Assembly: GCF_003918875.1 (NCBI RefSeq)
Contig: NW_025767033.1
Location: 868,001-932,000, forward strand
Source of the DNA: Haliotis rubra
Taxonomy: Eukaryota
Length of the DNA: 64,000 nucleotides
Direction: 5' to 3'
In this document: piece after piece, positions 13,285 to 53,820 of the stretch
How the letters are laid out: the number at the start of each line of letters is the position of its first letter
How positions within the stretch are numbered: the first letter of the stretch is position 1
Translations under genes and position numbers: made by a program
The notes under the pieces: model-generated
Told to the model about the DNA's origin: nothing
What the model saw: the letters and a program-made list of their open reading frames with translations, nothing else
Databases searched by the model: none

Positions 13285-16200
13285 TTGTAAAATTTAATAA
13301 ATTTATTCATTTTCTTTTGAAGGTAAGTTGGGGATTATCATTCAATAGCACAACTGCAAAAGCTGGGGCTCACTATGAAAATAACTTTGAAACTCCATAG
13401 CACTAAGTCATAACATTGACAAATATACAAGATATATATTTACAAGTAAATGCATACATAGAATCGCAGATGATAATCTTCATCTGTTCAATAAGGAGAG
13501 GCAGCTCATGAATATTTATCAATGTTTTTGACAAGTTTTTCAAACCAAAAACTGGAAAAGAAAACTAATTTGATGAATCAAATTTATCTGATCAATTAAC
13601 ATTTACCCATAATTCCTGGCCATTTATACTCCTGTAATTATTTCTAAAACTGAAAAAAAGTAAACCCACCAAACATATTCTTTTGGACTGTTGGCCAGTA
13701 CTTAAATGTTTCTCTTTTTAATGGTCTTCAAAAACTATCTTAAAAGAGTTACCTCCCATAATTGCTTTCTCCATGAGGGGCGAACCTTGGATGATATAAT
13801 ACTTTGAGTGTTATGAGTGCATGGAATATATACAATGTTCAAGTGACAGGACAATAACATAAAATTATAATGTACAACTAAATAGACATAAAACTCTCTT
13901 GAATCAATGTGTCTGAATATCAAGTTCAGATTTTAGATGGGTACATTGTCAGATTTGCTTCATAATTATACATTGTGTATAATACTCTCCTGAATCTATA
14001 TTTCACACTTATTCAGAAAACCTTAGAAATAGGGCTTGTTTGCCTCATGGACGATGAATGATGAAACAAGCATTAGAAATGTACAAGCACCTATCAAAAT
14101 GGCTCATGACTCCCACGTTCAGAACATGACATTCAGACTTCAAGATACAGATATGTTACAAGTGATGTCTTCACGAGGATGCAAAAATAAAAGTGGCGGA
14201 ATGCAATGTAAAGAAGATCACCAGCACGAGCATGTAATACAAACAATAGCACTTAGTTTATTTGCATGAAATATCCCTGAAGAGGAAACATATGGGATGA
14301 AACCGATTCACTGCCGAGTTGCATTAAACGTAATAGCACTTGGACAAAATAGGTCTCCAAAACCAAAAGCTACATATAAAAAATATAAGTCCAGATTGCA
14401 TCACTGGAAGGCAAATATACAGTACTTGCATATGTCAGGATTCAAGAGAAAGATATTGCAACAATGAGCCAAATACAGGCAGTTTGGGGTCAGGACTTTC
14501 CGCCATTACCGATAAAGTCTGTCATCAATGTCTGTGTGACATGGGACCTGTATGAATGTACTTAACTTATTTATTCAATGTAAAGATTGTTACCTGTTAA
14601 ATTTATATTCATCTTAAACCGAATCTGTGGACGTGTTGTTTCACTGACCTAATTATACTAAACTGTTATTTGAACCATCTGGTTCCACATTAACCAAATA
14701 ACCTACAATGTTATCTATGAATCTATGTGTTATTTATGCCAAGAGAATATTTCAAATTAATGTCTACAGTTCTCTTTCAGTTTATGTGAGTAACTGCAAT
14801 ATTTGGCAATTATTGTTTTCTTACTGTATATTCTAGATCCCGGTTAACTGTTTATCAGTAAAACTATCTTTCCTAAATATTACTCCCCAATTTAATCTAA
14901 AGTCTTCACATTTCATTCACACCAACTAAATCAAACTGACCTATTTTTCAAGCTTATTGATTAATGTTCCTCAACATTTAAGTATTTGTGAAAACACATT
15001 TTGAATTTTTAACTTACAATTAAATTAATTCATTTTATTTTCATTCAAGTATTTACAGGCTATCAATCAGCGATGGAACACCACAATCTGAGTCTGTGAG
15101 TCTTGCCTCTTCCCGTGCATCAAGTATTTCTGCATATACCCCTAATAGGGATATTGCTGTTTTGAGCATCCTTGGAAATACAATGACCCAGTTCAGACTG
15201 AGTGATAGAGGTCAAGGTCAGGCAGTGCACTTGTCCACCGACAGTTGAAATCTGCACTGAAACCAAGTTGCCACATGACCTACTTCCCACACGACCTTCT
15301 GACCTACTTGCCACATGACCTACTGACCTATAAAGGACTATTTCTATTTAAGAATATGCCACACCAACATTGCATGAGTGAGTGAGTTTAGTTTTATGCC
15401 ATTTTGGCAATATTCCAGCAATATCAGAGCATGGGACACCAGAAATAGGCTTCAGACAGTGTACCCATATGGGGAATCAAACTCAGCGTGATGAGTGAAC
15501 CCCTTAACCACAAGGCTACCTCACTGTCCCTTTTCTCAAGTGTATAAAATTCTATCAAAGTGATAATTTTGTTATATCATTCAGAAAACAATTCAAATAC
15601 TCAAAGTTTCTCATCAAGAAGATTAAACATAATCAGTGTTTAATTCTGAGGCAACCCTGGAGGTAGTAAGGATTTGCTCCTAAAACACATCAAATTTTAA
15701 TTTTATTCAAATTTTAAACATTATGGGTCCTTTAGGACTGCTCTTATAGTATTGATGTTGGAGTGATAGAAGTCAAGAAACAGAATTAATTCATGAAGTG
15801 AATAAGTAACTCGTGGACACAAGACAAATTAACTAAATGTTTCTGAAAGATGGACAATGAAGAATTTCTTTACTTCAGATTCTTACAAAACCAATTATTT
15901 CTTGAAGGAACATACTTGATAACATTTGTGTGGTTTGGGCTGCTTTTTATTCTTTGGTCTTCTGTTTTCCAGGAATCAACCAGAACATTTCATTATGTCA
16001 TGGAAATAAGTACAGGCCAGCCATTACAGAGGCAAGATACACCTACCTCAAACATCCACACATCACACCACAGCCACAATATGGTTACCTCATGAATTAA
16101 TGTATCGAGAGGCTAACTCACATATCGATACATACTATACTGTAGTGATACGTCTTCGTTATGCAGTAGTACTTGATTCATGATACTCCTACAGCAGTAT

Positions 16201-17357
16201 GTATCTTGATAGGACTGATGTATCGATACACCTAGCGATACTTGAATCACACGATTCATACAGACTCCAATATTTCATTTGAACTTTTGTTCAGTGAGAT
16301 TCTCCATTTTCCATGTGGATGGTTACCCAGGTCTAGCTATCAACCAGTTTTTGTCATCAAGTATGAAAGGATACTTCAAGCTTGTTCTGATAGTATTATG
16401 CAATCTGATTCAGCACTTTCTTTCATAATAGGAACAAGAGAGGAATGTGGAGCTAGTTAAGTAGTCAAGAGGACAAGTTTAGCCAATCAATAAATCTTTA
16501 GACCCTGATACAGAATTAACATAAGAATCGATTCATTGGTAAACATATCTGTTAGATTATTGGCAGATGGATATGTGAAGTTAAGCGACACATTGTGAAG
16601 CATGACACCTCTAACATAATCAGGTGTGTGACTGAAAGCATCTACTTCAACCAGCTGCTGAAGAAGACGCCGTACAGAATCTGGTATCACTGTCGTCTTG
16701 CAAACAAACAGTTATCATGGCAACATATCACACAATATTTGTGACCCTGCTAGTCTCAAACCGAATCGATACACGAACATCATGGAGAATATGCTACAAC
16801 AACTACAAGCTTCACATGACTGTTCAGCCAAACATGAAAGACCTACCATCTTCCCAGGTCCTTGAATGAGAGTCCAAACACTTCAAATGTAAGCAGAACA
16901 GAGAAGACAGCTAACTCATCACTTTCGGAGAGTCTTTGTACCACTTACACATAATACATTTTGAGCAAAGCGAGGCCAATGTTGAGTTTCAACCCAGGCA
17001 ACTGGGCTTCATTGAACTACAAACACAGTCGTTCATCAATCATCAATATACTTCTGAAGGATACCGCTTCTTCTATATTATACAGATTACAAGAACACTC
17101 CAACACGGTTTGTCACACATGAGTTGAATTGCTCAAACTACGTCTGAAGCACCGTTCCACGTGAACAGCGTTCCTGATGAAAGGTCAAAGGTGACACATC
17201 TGTCGGCACATTGAGTCGGGGCCACCATACAAGCTGGCCACTCCCAAACAAGCACACTTAGTATCCATGAGAATGATGATGATATGCGGTTACCATGGTG
17301 ATTATGATGACAGTATTAATAACAGTGTCGGTAAGCAGCAACAATAAGGGAGGTAAC
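13285..17357 (-). other. Probable long 3' UTR of PKN (end uncertain)
   Basis: Follows the stop codon; minus-strand AATAAA candidates near 15945, 15702, 15036, 14570 and 13301. Confidence 0.4.
15375..15530 (-). mobile_element. SINE family A
   Basis: Similarity to other copies. Confidence 0.85.
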
Positions 17358-17501
17358 TCAGCACCAGTCTGCTATATATGTGAAGTCTCGGAAAAGGTCC
17401 TGTTCATTTGTGATCAAAGGACGACGTTCCTTTGCGGGAGTCAGAACAGCTTTTTCCTGCGTGAATTCCTCGTCGAAGTTGCTGACATCCTCCATTCCTT
17501 T
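17358..17501 (-). CDS. PKN2: PKN last coding exon ([14 protein letters not shown]...LTP...[11 protein letters not shown])
   Basis: ttacag|; NFD, turn and hydrophobic motifs; TGA at 17360-17358. Confidence 0.97.
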
Positions 17502-52934: not shown

Positions 52935-53197
52935 TGAGTTTCGTTCTAAGTCACTTTTAGCAATATTCCAGCAATATCACGGCGGGGGACACCAGAAACA
53001 AAATACAGGAAATACCAAAAAGAATAATAAAACATTGAGTGAGTATAGTTTTACGCCGCTTTTAGCAATGTTCCAGCAATATCATGGCCGGGGACACCAG
53101 AAATGGGCTTCACACATTTGTACCCATGTGGGAAATTGAACCCAGGTCTTCGGAGTGACGAGCGAAGGCTTTAACCACTAGGCTACCCCGCCGCCCC
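52935..53197 (-). mobile_element. Two SINE family A copies (partial; full 53036-53197)
   Basis: TSD AATAAAACATTGAG around the second copy. Confidence 0.88.
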
Positions 53198-53576
53198 AAT
53201 AAAACATTGAGATACTTTAGATACTGAAACAATATATGAAAGACATTTGATGACAGCCCACAGAAAGGCTATATGCACGCAGCATAGAGACAACTTAAGT
53301 CAGTAACACCCTTTCATCGTCTGCTCAACAACGGGCTGCAGTACCCGATGTCAGTGTGAGGTAGGTTTCATTCACATCATGTAATTTTCAGTGAAAAAAC
53401 TGAGTGTTCACCAGTCAAACATCGACATGGGATGCATATAAAAAGGCTGATTATACAATTCAACTGTAAACCCTAACTCTTACAAACAGTTTCAATGCAA
53501 GGATGGTCTAACAACTGAGACGTAAAATGTCCGGTCAGGGCTCACTTGAAAGTAGTTTCTCTCACTTGGCTACTGT

Positions 53577-53820
53577 GAATGAGTGGGTGAGTTTAGTTTT
53601 ACGCTGCACTCAGCAATATCCCATCTATATGGCGGTTGTCTGTAAATAATAGAGTTTGGACCAGACAATCCAATGATCAACAGCATGAGCATCGATCTAC
53701 GCAATTGGGATACGATGACGTGTCAACCAAGTCAGTGAGCCTGACCACCAAATCCTGTTAGTTAGTCGCCTCTTACGATTAGTTTCTGAAGATCAATTCT
53801 AACCCACATATTCACAGGTC
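53577..53820 (-). mobile_element. SINE family B
   Basis: Similarity to the 21897 copy. Confidence 0.87.

Follow-up and report, generated by a model that had tools for sequence, protein, structure and literature searches.

The orientation bias of transposable elements within introns is a textbook footprint of selection, and the known cases are modest and mostly favor the antisense direction. Here we describe the orientation of short interspersed elements (SINEs) in the introns of the abalone Haliotis rubra. Our focus is a stretch of 64,000 nucleotides (positions 868001-932000 of contig NW_025767033.1, in a genome of 1.38 Gb in 2855 contigs), which we call the window. It holds most of a gene for PKN (protein kinase N) and is densely populated by SINEs of two families, which we call A and B, along with copies of a third family (C) that resembles the MESC SINEs of abalone.

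In mammals, the orientation of intronic elements departs from 50:50, which has been blamed on purifying selection against whichever strand bears splice or polyadenylation signals, and the effect is stronger near exons (PMC1794541, PMC3088655). The mammalian bias (van de Lagemaat 2006; Zhang, Romanish & Mager 2011) and the abalone bias are alike in that both depart from 50:50 relative to the host gene. Mammalian SINEs show a modest antisense excess (43% of mid-aged Alus are forward, PMC1391917; dog SINEC_Cf is antisense-rich), whereas the abalone excess is of sense copies, reaches about 83%, extends over whole introns, and is seen in three families. An excess of sense Alus has been described within 20-200 bp of exons, and it was ascribed to cryptic acceptors in antisense Alus (Lev-Maor 2008, as cited in PMC3088655). 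As summarized there, the Alu case shares with our proposal for abalone the idea that the antisense strand is harmful because of splice signals from the reversed 3' end. The Alu signal is a poly-U tract with an acceptor and acts only close to exons, whereas the abalone signal would be tandem donors followed by an acceptor-like stretch, in introns of tens of kilobases.

Repeat orientation has also been used to predict transcribed regions, by ROAST/FEAST (Glusman et al. 2006, PMC1391917). This is the same principle as in the first-pass annotation of the window, which was made from the sequence alone and proposed that SINE orientation predicts the strand and extent of a gene. Both the intronic bias and its use for predicting transcription units are, then, already established. 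A human repeat adds about 0.2 bits (PMC1391917), whereas one abalone SINE A would add about 0.8 bits toward the sense direction, enough for a gene's strand to be decided from a handful of copies.

Among mollusc SINEs, the Haliotis MESC elements carry (CA)n internally and (CACCT)n at the end, according to Matetovici et al. (2016, PMC4758252). As far as that paper and a study of bivalve SINEs with highly conserved domains (PMC11481361) describe them, mollusc SINEs are like families A, B, and C in being short and non-coding with short tandem-repeat tails. Term searches in the available text of these two papers turned up neither an (ACTC)n tail nor any analysis of how SINEs are oriented relative to genes: the word "orientation" was absent from PMC4758252, while in PMC11481361 "orientation" occurred once and "antisense" was absent. 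Our literature searches found no report of an intronic SINE orientation bias in abalone.

Intronic SINEs run with the gene

Intronic SINEs in H. rubra run with the gene about five times as often as against it, and this holds across genes and in three SINE families. We first saw the pattern in PKN. An nhmmer search with profiles for A and B placed 17 A elements and 2 B elements on the minus strand from 15 to 54 kb of the window, where a related element with its tail at 18690 also lies, and on the plus strand of the same region it found no A or B copy with a 3' end. Considering the tails alone, the split is 18:0 (two-sided p = 8e-6). The first-pass annotation had picked out these 18 positions as SINE tails, and each is indeed a (GAGT)n or (GACT)n tract on the plus strand that directly precedes the reverse complement of the SINE 3' module.

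The same bias is present elsewhere in the genome. We examined 171.6 kb across the motor-domain exons of seven kinesin genes and 78.7 kb in 30 short loci within 1.5 kb of SNF2-domain exons from 15 genes. The strand of each gene was taken from its Pfam exon matches, the strand convention of the loci was checked, fragments of elements were merged, and overlapping loci were de-duplicated. These 22 genes are unlinked and lie on both contig strands. Across their 250 kb, 77 A and B elements are sense and 16 are antisense (a sense fraction of 0.83, exact confidence interval 0.74-0.90, p = 1e-10). By gene, sense copies outnumber antisense copies in 18, the reverse is true in 2, and 2 are tied (sign test, p = 4e-4). 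The proposal that SINE orientation tracks the strand of a gene and marks its transcription unit therefore extends to these genes. Among the antisense intronic copies are L013 2535-2696, L017 2436-2668, L007 2416-2656, and L014 7172-7366.

Family C, which we found by a family-blind all-against-all comparison of the SINE-masked sample, is unrelated to A and B and has a (TCACC)n tail. Its elements number 10 in the sense and 1 in the antisense orientation, and the sole antisense genic copy is tail-less. The family-blind comparison also gave 10:4 for an element of about 0.5-2 kb. In one kinesin locus (L008), this element adjoins a stretch that encodes a reverse transcriptase/RNase H domain of the long-terminal-repeat (LTR) type. 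In that locus, positions 2352-4691 hold two open frames (391 and 324 amino acids) in the sense direction of the kinesin, the second with an RT_RNaseH domain, and represent an LTR-type retroelement fragment.

The PKN gene and its extent

PKN lies on the minus strand, as the first-pass annotation had it, so the 18 tails are sense to the gene. There is a Pfam Pkinase match at 20892-21161, and tblastn with a PKN homologue (P0067, amino acids 11-982) gave 17 coding segments, from 46636 (amino acid 11) down to 17361 (the C-terminus). The homologues were reached by using one exon as the query and were then placed on the window by tblastn; the segments were kept separate. The 150 representative homologues are at most 92% identical to the window.

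17361-46636, minus: PKN coding exons from the HR1 region to the C-terminus (Pfam, tblastn, donor and acceptor sites at segment ends)
20892-21113, minus: PKN kinase exon (Pfam, tblastn)
46330-46634, minus: first coding exon found, with its acceptor (5' boundary) at 46634 (RNA-like contigs)

GTGAGT is the commonest PKN donor (4 of the 11 recognizable ones), which bears out its earlier description as a donor sequence; GTAAGT accounts for 2 of the 11. Amino acids 503-643 of P0067 had no tblastn match in the window. At 25421-25560 on the minus strand there is a proline-rich open stretch that ends in ...GAACCCGA/GTGAGT, and this could be a linker exon of PKN that the alignment missed, with GTGAGT as its donor.

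Transcriptome-like contigs from three runs (X1-X3) cover 46330-46634 and end exactly at 46634. They bear 95-169 extra letters past 46634 that match nothing in 46635-52329, so the intron upstream of this exon reaches beyond 52.3 kb. The next upstream exon is absent from 46635-52329 according to these contigs, and we did not find it in 52.3-64 kb either. Unique bins of the PKN introns have zero depth in X1-X3, and all bins are covered in a DNA run (X15). RNA depth at 51.5-51.9 kb was considered as a sign of an exon and was rejected as a repeat, since the DNA run is 20-40 times deeper there.

The first-pass annotation had placed all 18 tails inside the transcription unit. Eleven of them are in the coding span. 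Six lie upstream of the first coding exon that we found, and of these, the tails at 47969, 50514, and 50643 are shown to be intronic. The tail at 15375, however, is about 1.8 kb 3' of the stop codon.

Base composition also changes along the window. The ratio of observed to expected CpG is 0.8-1.1 at 1-10 kb, versus about 0.45 from about 11 kb to the window end, and over this latter part the minus strand has more T than A. The shift near 11000 coincides with the onset of one-way SINE orientation. We infer that it is a footprint of gene-body methylation and of transcription that reaches the window end. No gene was found at 1-15 kb, and open reading frames of at least 90 amino acids there had no Pfam match; together with the CpG ratio, this indicates that 1-15 kb is probably intergenic.

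SINEs in the window

The elements in and around PKN are as follows, identified with nhmmer unless noted otherwise. Those on the minus strand are sense to PKN.

15377-15529, minus: full-length SINE A with an ACTC tail, about 1.8 kb beyond the stop codon of PKN on the 3' side (131 bits)
18685-18900, minus: ACTC-tailed related SINE that has a body of its own and a similar 3' module (read directly; unmatched by the A and B profiles)
21901-22139, minus: full-length SINE B with an ACTC tail and an 11-nt target-site duplication
23209-23370, minus: SINE A, (AGTC)n tail, 13-nt target-site duplication
26400-26561, minus: SINE A, short ACTC-type tail
28460-28584, minus: weak SINE A fragment
28737-28892, minus: SINE A, ACTC tail
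29953-30113, minus: SINE A, ACTC tail
34604-34767, minus: SINE A, ACTC tail, 12-nt target-site duplication; genome copies are up to 95% identical
36559-36687, minus: old, diverged SINE A-like copy with a short tail (46 bits)
38430-38612, minus: SINE A, (AGTC/AATC)n tail
42296-42456, minus: SINE A with the longest ACTC tail in the window, (GTGA)6.5 on the plus strand at 42285-42310
45456-45552, minus: SINE A fragment, model positions 7-103, without the 3' end
46160-46227, minus: SINE A, 5'-truncated, degenerate tail
47968-48111, minus: SINE A within the intron that precedes the 46.6-kb exon (nhmmer, RNA-like contigs)
50516-50592, minus: SINE A, 5'-truncated, ACTC tail
50645-50804, minus: SINE A, full length, ACTC tail
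52934-52998 and 53034-53196, minus: pair of SINE A copies
53581-53818, minus: SINE B, full length, ACTC-type tail
18008-18683, plus: antisense SINE B, model positions 1-162, without the 3' end
20274-20463, plus: antisense SINE B, model positions 1-186, without the ACTC tail
22172-22711, plus: antisense copy from the (CAAA)-tailed subfamily of SINE B, with an interruption of about 330 bp
45590-45840, plus: tail-less antisense copy of the MESC-like family C, limited to the 5' 240 nt (92% identical to the family's representative by blastn)

The profile census agrees with the first-pass annotation that the antisense B copies at 18006, 20272, and 22172 lack the ACTC tail. The one at 22172 probably never had such a tail, as a member of the (CAAA)-type subfamily. 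The earlier list gave these three as antisense family-B copies and left out the tail-less antisense family C copy at 45590-45840. The copy at 18008-18683 is split by a 164-bp unit present twice in tandem (18188-18511, 93% identity).

At 1-15 kb, the A and B profiles identified 5 copies on the plus strand and 2 on the minus strand. The mixed orientation that was noted between 3 and 11 kb is confirmed: four plus and two minus tailed copies lie there, plus an AGTC-tailed plus copy at 10457.

3429-3519, plus: SINE B
4004-4211, plus: SINE B
7231-7322, plus: SINE A
10147-10382, plus: SINE B
10457-10577, plus: SINE A
8194-8458, minus: SINE B
9758-9918, minus: SINE A
4686-4987, plus: family C copy outside PKN
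63269-63623, plus: full-length MESC-like SINE with a (TCACC)n tail (read directly)

The last of these is the TCACC tail that the first-pass annotation had set aside as an exception at about 63610. The window has a run of Ns at 4434-4585.

Structure of the three families

Family A is 164 nt long and family B is 242 nt long. The last ~45 nt are common to both and end in ...ATATTGCT.A..GCGGCGTAAAACTAA(ACTC)n. Altogether, there are 124 A and B elements in about 315 kb. A genome search with one A copy gave 1783 candidates, and the 40 that were scored are 93-95% identical to it and lie on many contigs, with roughly equal numbers on the two contig strands. Exact direct repeats of 10-14 nt flank 19 of 49 near-full-length copies (29 of 49 if all repeats of at least 7 nt are counted). 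These target-site duplications are each different and begin directly after the tail, often with TC or CTC, as if they extended the tail. Because the direct repeats differ, these are retroposed copies and not local duplications.

Family A has A-box-like TAGCCTAGTGG ... B-box-like GGTTCGATTCC motifs. One full copy had no Rfam tRNA match (E ≤ 1) that would point to a tRNA origin of the head, and no A copy was called by ARAGORN. Family B has no evident A or B boxes. ARAGORN did call a tRNA-Thr (TGT) of 95 nt at 1781-1875 on the minus strand of the window, which may be a real gene or a SINE head.

The tails vary within families. Some A copies have (AGTC)n instead of (ACTC)n (23209-23370 and 38430-38612 in the window, L009 3491-3652, and L018 4576-4737), and their target-site duplications often begin with TC, CTC, or GTC, extending the tail unit, which suggests microhomology between tail and target during priming. 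A subfamily of B has the same body and ends in ...GCGGC(A/G)TTAAACAA followed by (CAAA)n or (CCAA)n, in place of AAAACTAA(ACTC)n (L014 1650-1865, L007 8076-8115, L043 738-936, and 22667-22711 in the window). This looks like a tail switch inside one family.

The family C representative and the window copy at 63269-63623 have an internal (CA)n and a terminal (CACCT)n, as described for the Haliotis MESC SINEs; the likeness was drawn from the published description. Families A and B were matched to no published family in this analysis.

SINE A sequence is very abundant in RNA. In the RNA-like runs, its summed contig depth (at 50530-50930) is about 5e4-9e4, versus about 5 for the PKN exon, or about 1e4 times more; contig depth shows neither strand nor RNA polymerase III transcripts.

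What makes the bias

Our inference is that the bias is the work of selection and not of integration, with splicing signals as the target. SINEs would retropose by target-primed reverse transcription and insert in a roughly orientation-blind way, and purifying selection would then remove the antisense copies inside transcription units. In an antisense copy, the reversed tail and 3' module would put RNA-processing signals into the pre-mRNA: tandem GTGAGT donors first and then, within about 30 nt, a branch-point-like TTTTAC, a short pyrimidine run, and acceptor-like sites (TTTTAG or TATTCCAG). The tail donors would be one contributor among several. Read by eye, the reversed 3' module is TTTTAC..CGCTTTTAG..TATTCCAG, which is acceptor-like and comes directly after the donors. 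Overall, we hold purifying selection against antisense SINEs via reversed-strand splice signals, after roughly orientation-blind insertion, to be a plausible explanation that falls somewhat short of being probable.

Several observations favor it, beginning with the bias in 22 genes, its recurrence in family C, and the use of GTGAGT by PKN itself. Copies truncated at the 5' end but intact at the 3' end match full-length ones in bias (6:2 for A and 5:1 for B), so the 3' part suffices and the head is dispensable. In genes, the density of sense copies (0.23-0.48 per kb) is near the per-strand density of 0.24 per kb at the probably intergenic 1-15 kb, while antisense density in genes is 0.05-0.10 per kb, so it looks as though antisense copies were lost rather than sense copies gained. 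The bias also rises with the age of the copies (44:11 above 0.88 identity, 24:4 at 0.80-0.88, and 16:1 below 0.80), and it is 38:4 within 1.5 kb of exons versus 39:12 in whole introns (p = 0.10). Finally, donor-like sequences are depleted on sense strands outside SINEs. There, GTGAGT occurs 65 times versus 91 for its reverse complement, where base skew gives an expected ratio of 1.23 (p = 7e-4), although undetected old sense tails may inflate this figure. GGTAAGT and AGGTAAG are likewise depleted. For these counts, masking was wide, duplicate contexts were collapsed, and a 26-bp satellite in one kinesin locus was dealt with.

Other observations weigh against this explanation. The age trend, the exon-distance trend, and the density comparison (which has 7 intergenic copies) are each non-significant. 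The youngest copies are already 80% sense, so either fast selection or some integration bias is needed. Eight antisense intronic copies keep 1-3 intact GTGAGT or GTAAGT units. The sample is 114 A and B elements from about 290 kb rather than the whole genome, and the intergenic comparison is a single 15-kb stretch.

The first-pass annotation had attributed the one-way tails to purging of GTGAGT donors, and the tandem donors of the reversed (ACTC)n tail might indeed be the main or only reason that antisense copies are lost. Reversed, an (ACTC)n tail perfectly matches the intronic half of the donor consensus and gives the commonest PKN donor, no antisense B copy in PKN has an ACTC tail, and sense strands are depleted in GTGAGT. 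Family C, whose unrelated tail is also donor-like when reversed (AG/GTGAGG), is 10:1, with a tail-less copy as its one antisense genic member. The least biased class is B with (CAAA)n tails (8:5, versus 13:4 for ACTC-tailed B); this subfamily would be the ideal control for the donor hypothesis, but the difference between ACTC and CAAA tails is not significant (p = 0.11). Against a leading role for the tail, (AGTC)n tails, which reverse to (GACT)n and give no GT donor, are 7:1, and degenerate tails are 11:1, while ACTC tails are 49:8; comparing ACTC with AGTC plus degenerate tails, Fisher's test gives p = 1.0 (45:8 versus 16:2, leaving out 46.6-54 kb). Copies that are 3'-truncated are 20:4, but they make an imperfect control, since their 3' end must have existed at insertion. 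The numbers are small and none of these tail-class contrasts is significant. Surviving antisense copies were expected to have lost their donors, which proved wrong: the eight noted above have a mean of 2.0 intact units versus 2.7 in 45 sense copies, which is not significantly fewer (p = 0.16). The bias is stronger in family A than in B (57:7 versus 32:12, p = 0.04), though the tail is common to both. Furthermore, ACTCAC runs are tolerated in PKN at 19526 and at 35752-35772, where they give GTGAGT in the pre-mRNA; the second had been flagged as an exception in the first-pass annotation. Thus, GTGAGT tails as the specific cause of the bias are unproven, and we consider it unlikely that they are the main or only cause.

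The bias might instead be made at integration, without selection, if the machinery of the partner long interspersed element (LINE) preferentially nicks the template strand of transcribed DNA. The 80% sense fraction of the least diverged copies would fit this, as would the similar bias of tailed, 5'-truncated, and differently tailed copies that share one 3' module. But the tail of family C differs from that of A and B, so its LINE partner is probably different, and two machineries would have to share this property. Also, A and B differ in bias (p = 0.04) despite their common 3' module, and the densities suggest antisense loss and not redistribution. De novo human L1 insertions are reportedly little biased relative to transcription. 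Target-site composition was rejected as the cause of a 5:1 bias, since strand skews are far too small (T/A 1.11 and G/C 1.04 on sense strands, or 4-11%) and the target-site duplications have no strong asymmetric motif beyond the TC start. We give integration bias as the sole cause a low probability. Avoidance of double-stranded RNA is less probable still. Under this explanation, an antisense copy would pair with abundant sense SINE RNA or with neighboring sense copies, would trigger editing, RNA interference, or mis-splicing, and would be lost whatever its tail. The bias shows no significant dependence on tail type and occurs in three families, the RNA-like runs hold SINE A sequence in extreme abundance, and inverted SINE pairs are under-represented in mammals (bioRxiv 10.1101/2020.10.27.358119). 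However, avoidance of inverted pairs is symmetric and would not set the sense direction in 18 of 20 informative genes, the contig depth that shows the abundance is silent on strand and on RNA polymerase III, and close inverted pairs do exist (L013 2325-2486 minus with 2535-2696 plus; 21901-22139 minus with 22172 plus in the window). As for chance or artefact (a local run on the same strand, tandem duplication, or biased detection), the close pairs at 50516/50645 and 52934/53034 might be non-independent, but the independent target-site duplications around copies, the same bias in 22 unlinked genes on both contig strands, and the even division of the top 40 genome copies between contig strands make this explanation barely credible.

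Other features

At 57452-58017 on the plus strand of the window, there are reverse-transcriptase fragments (Pfam RVT_1). Arrays of the same 59-60-bp unit flank them on both sides (56697-57096 and 58763-58971), and 56697-58971 is a retroelement with terminal tandem arrays whose direction is opposite to that of PKN. Outside the window, the satellite mentioned above is a long array of ~26-bp units (about CATGTTTGACCACTATAGCCACTTCA) at positions 1-1700 of locus L012 (C335:3810249-), inside a kinesin intron.

Implications

A bolder reading joins these strands. In it, the microsatellite-like tails of SINEs in abalone, and perhaps in other molluscs, as set by their LINE partners, would be tandem reverse-strand donors; combined with an acceptor-like 3' module, they would make an antisense insertion into any transcribed DNA harmful enough for SINE orientation alone to map the strand and borders of transcription units, with a footprint stronger than any known in vertebrates. 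Alternatively, the bias would be made at integration by a transcription-coupled LINE machinery. We regard this reading, with either ending, as rather unlikely.

A 5:1 sense bias in three families would give a cheap, annotation-free marker of gene strand and extent for poorly annotated mollusc genomes. One SINE body with (ACTC)n, (AGTC)n, or (CAAA)n tails would be a natural experiment on the harm that decoy donors or acceptors do in long introns. If the bias instead arises at integration, it would be a new property of a LINE machinery.

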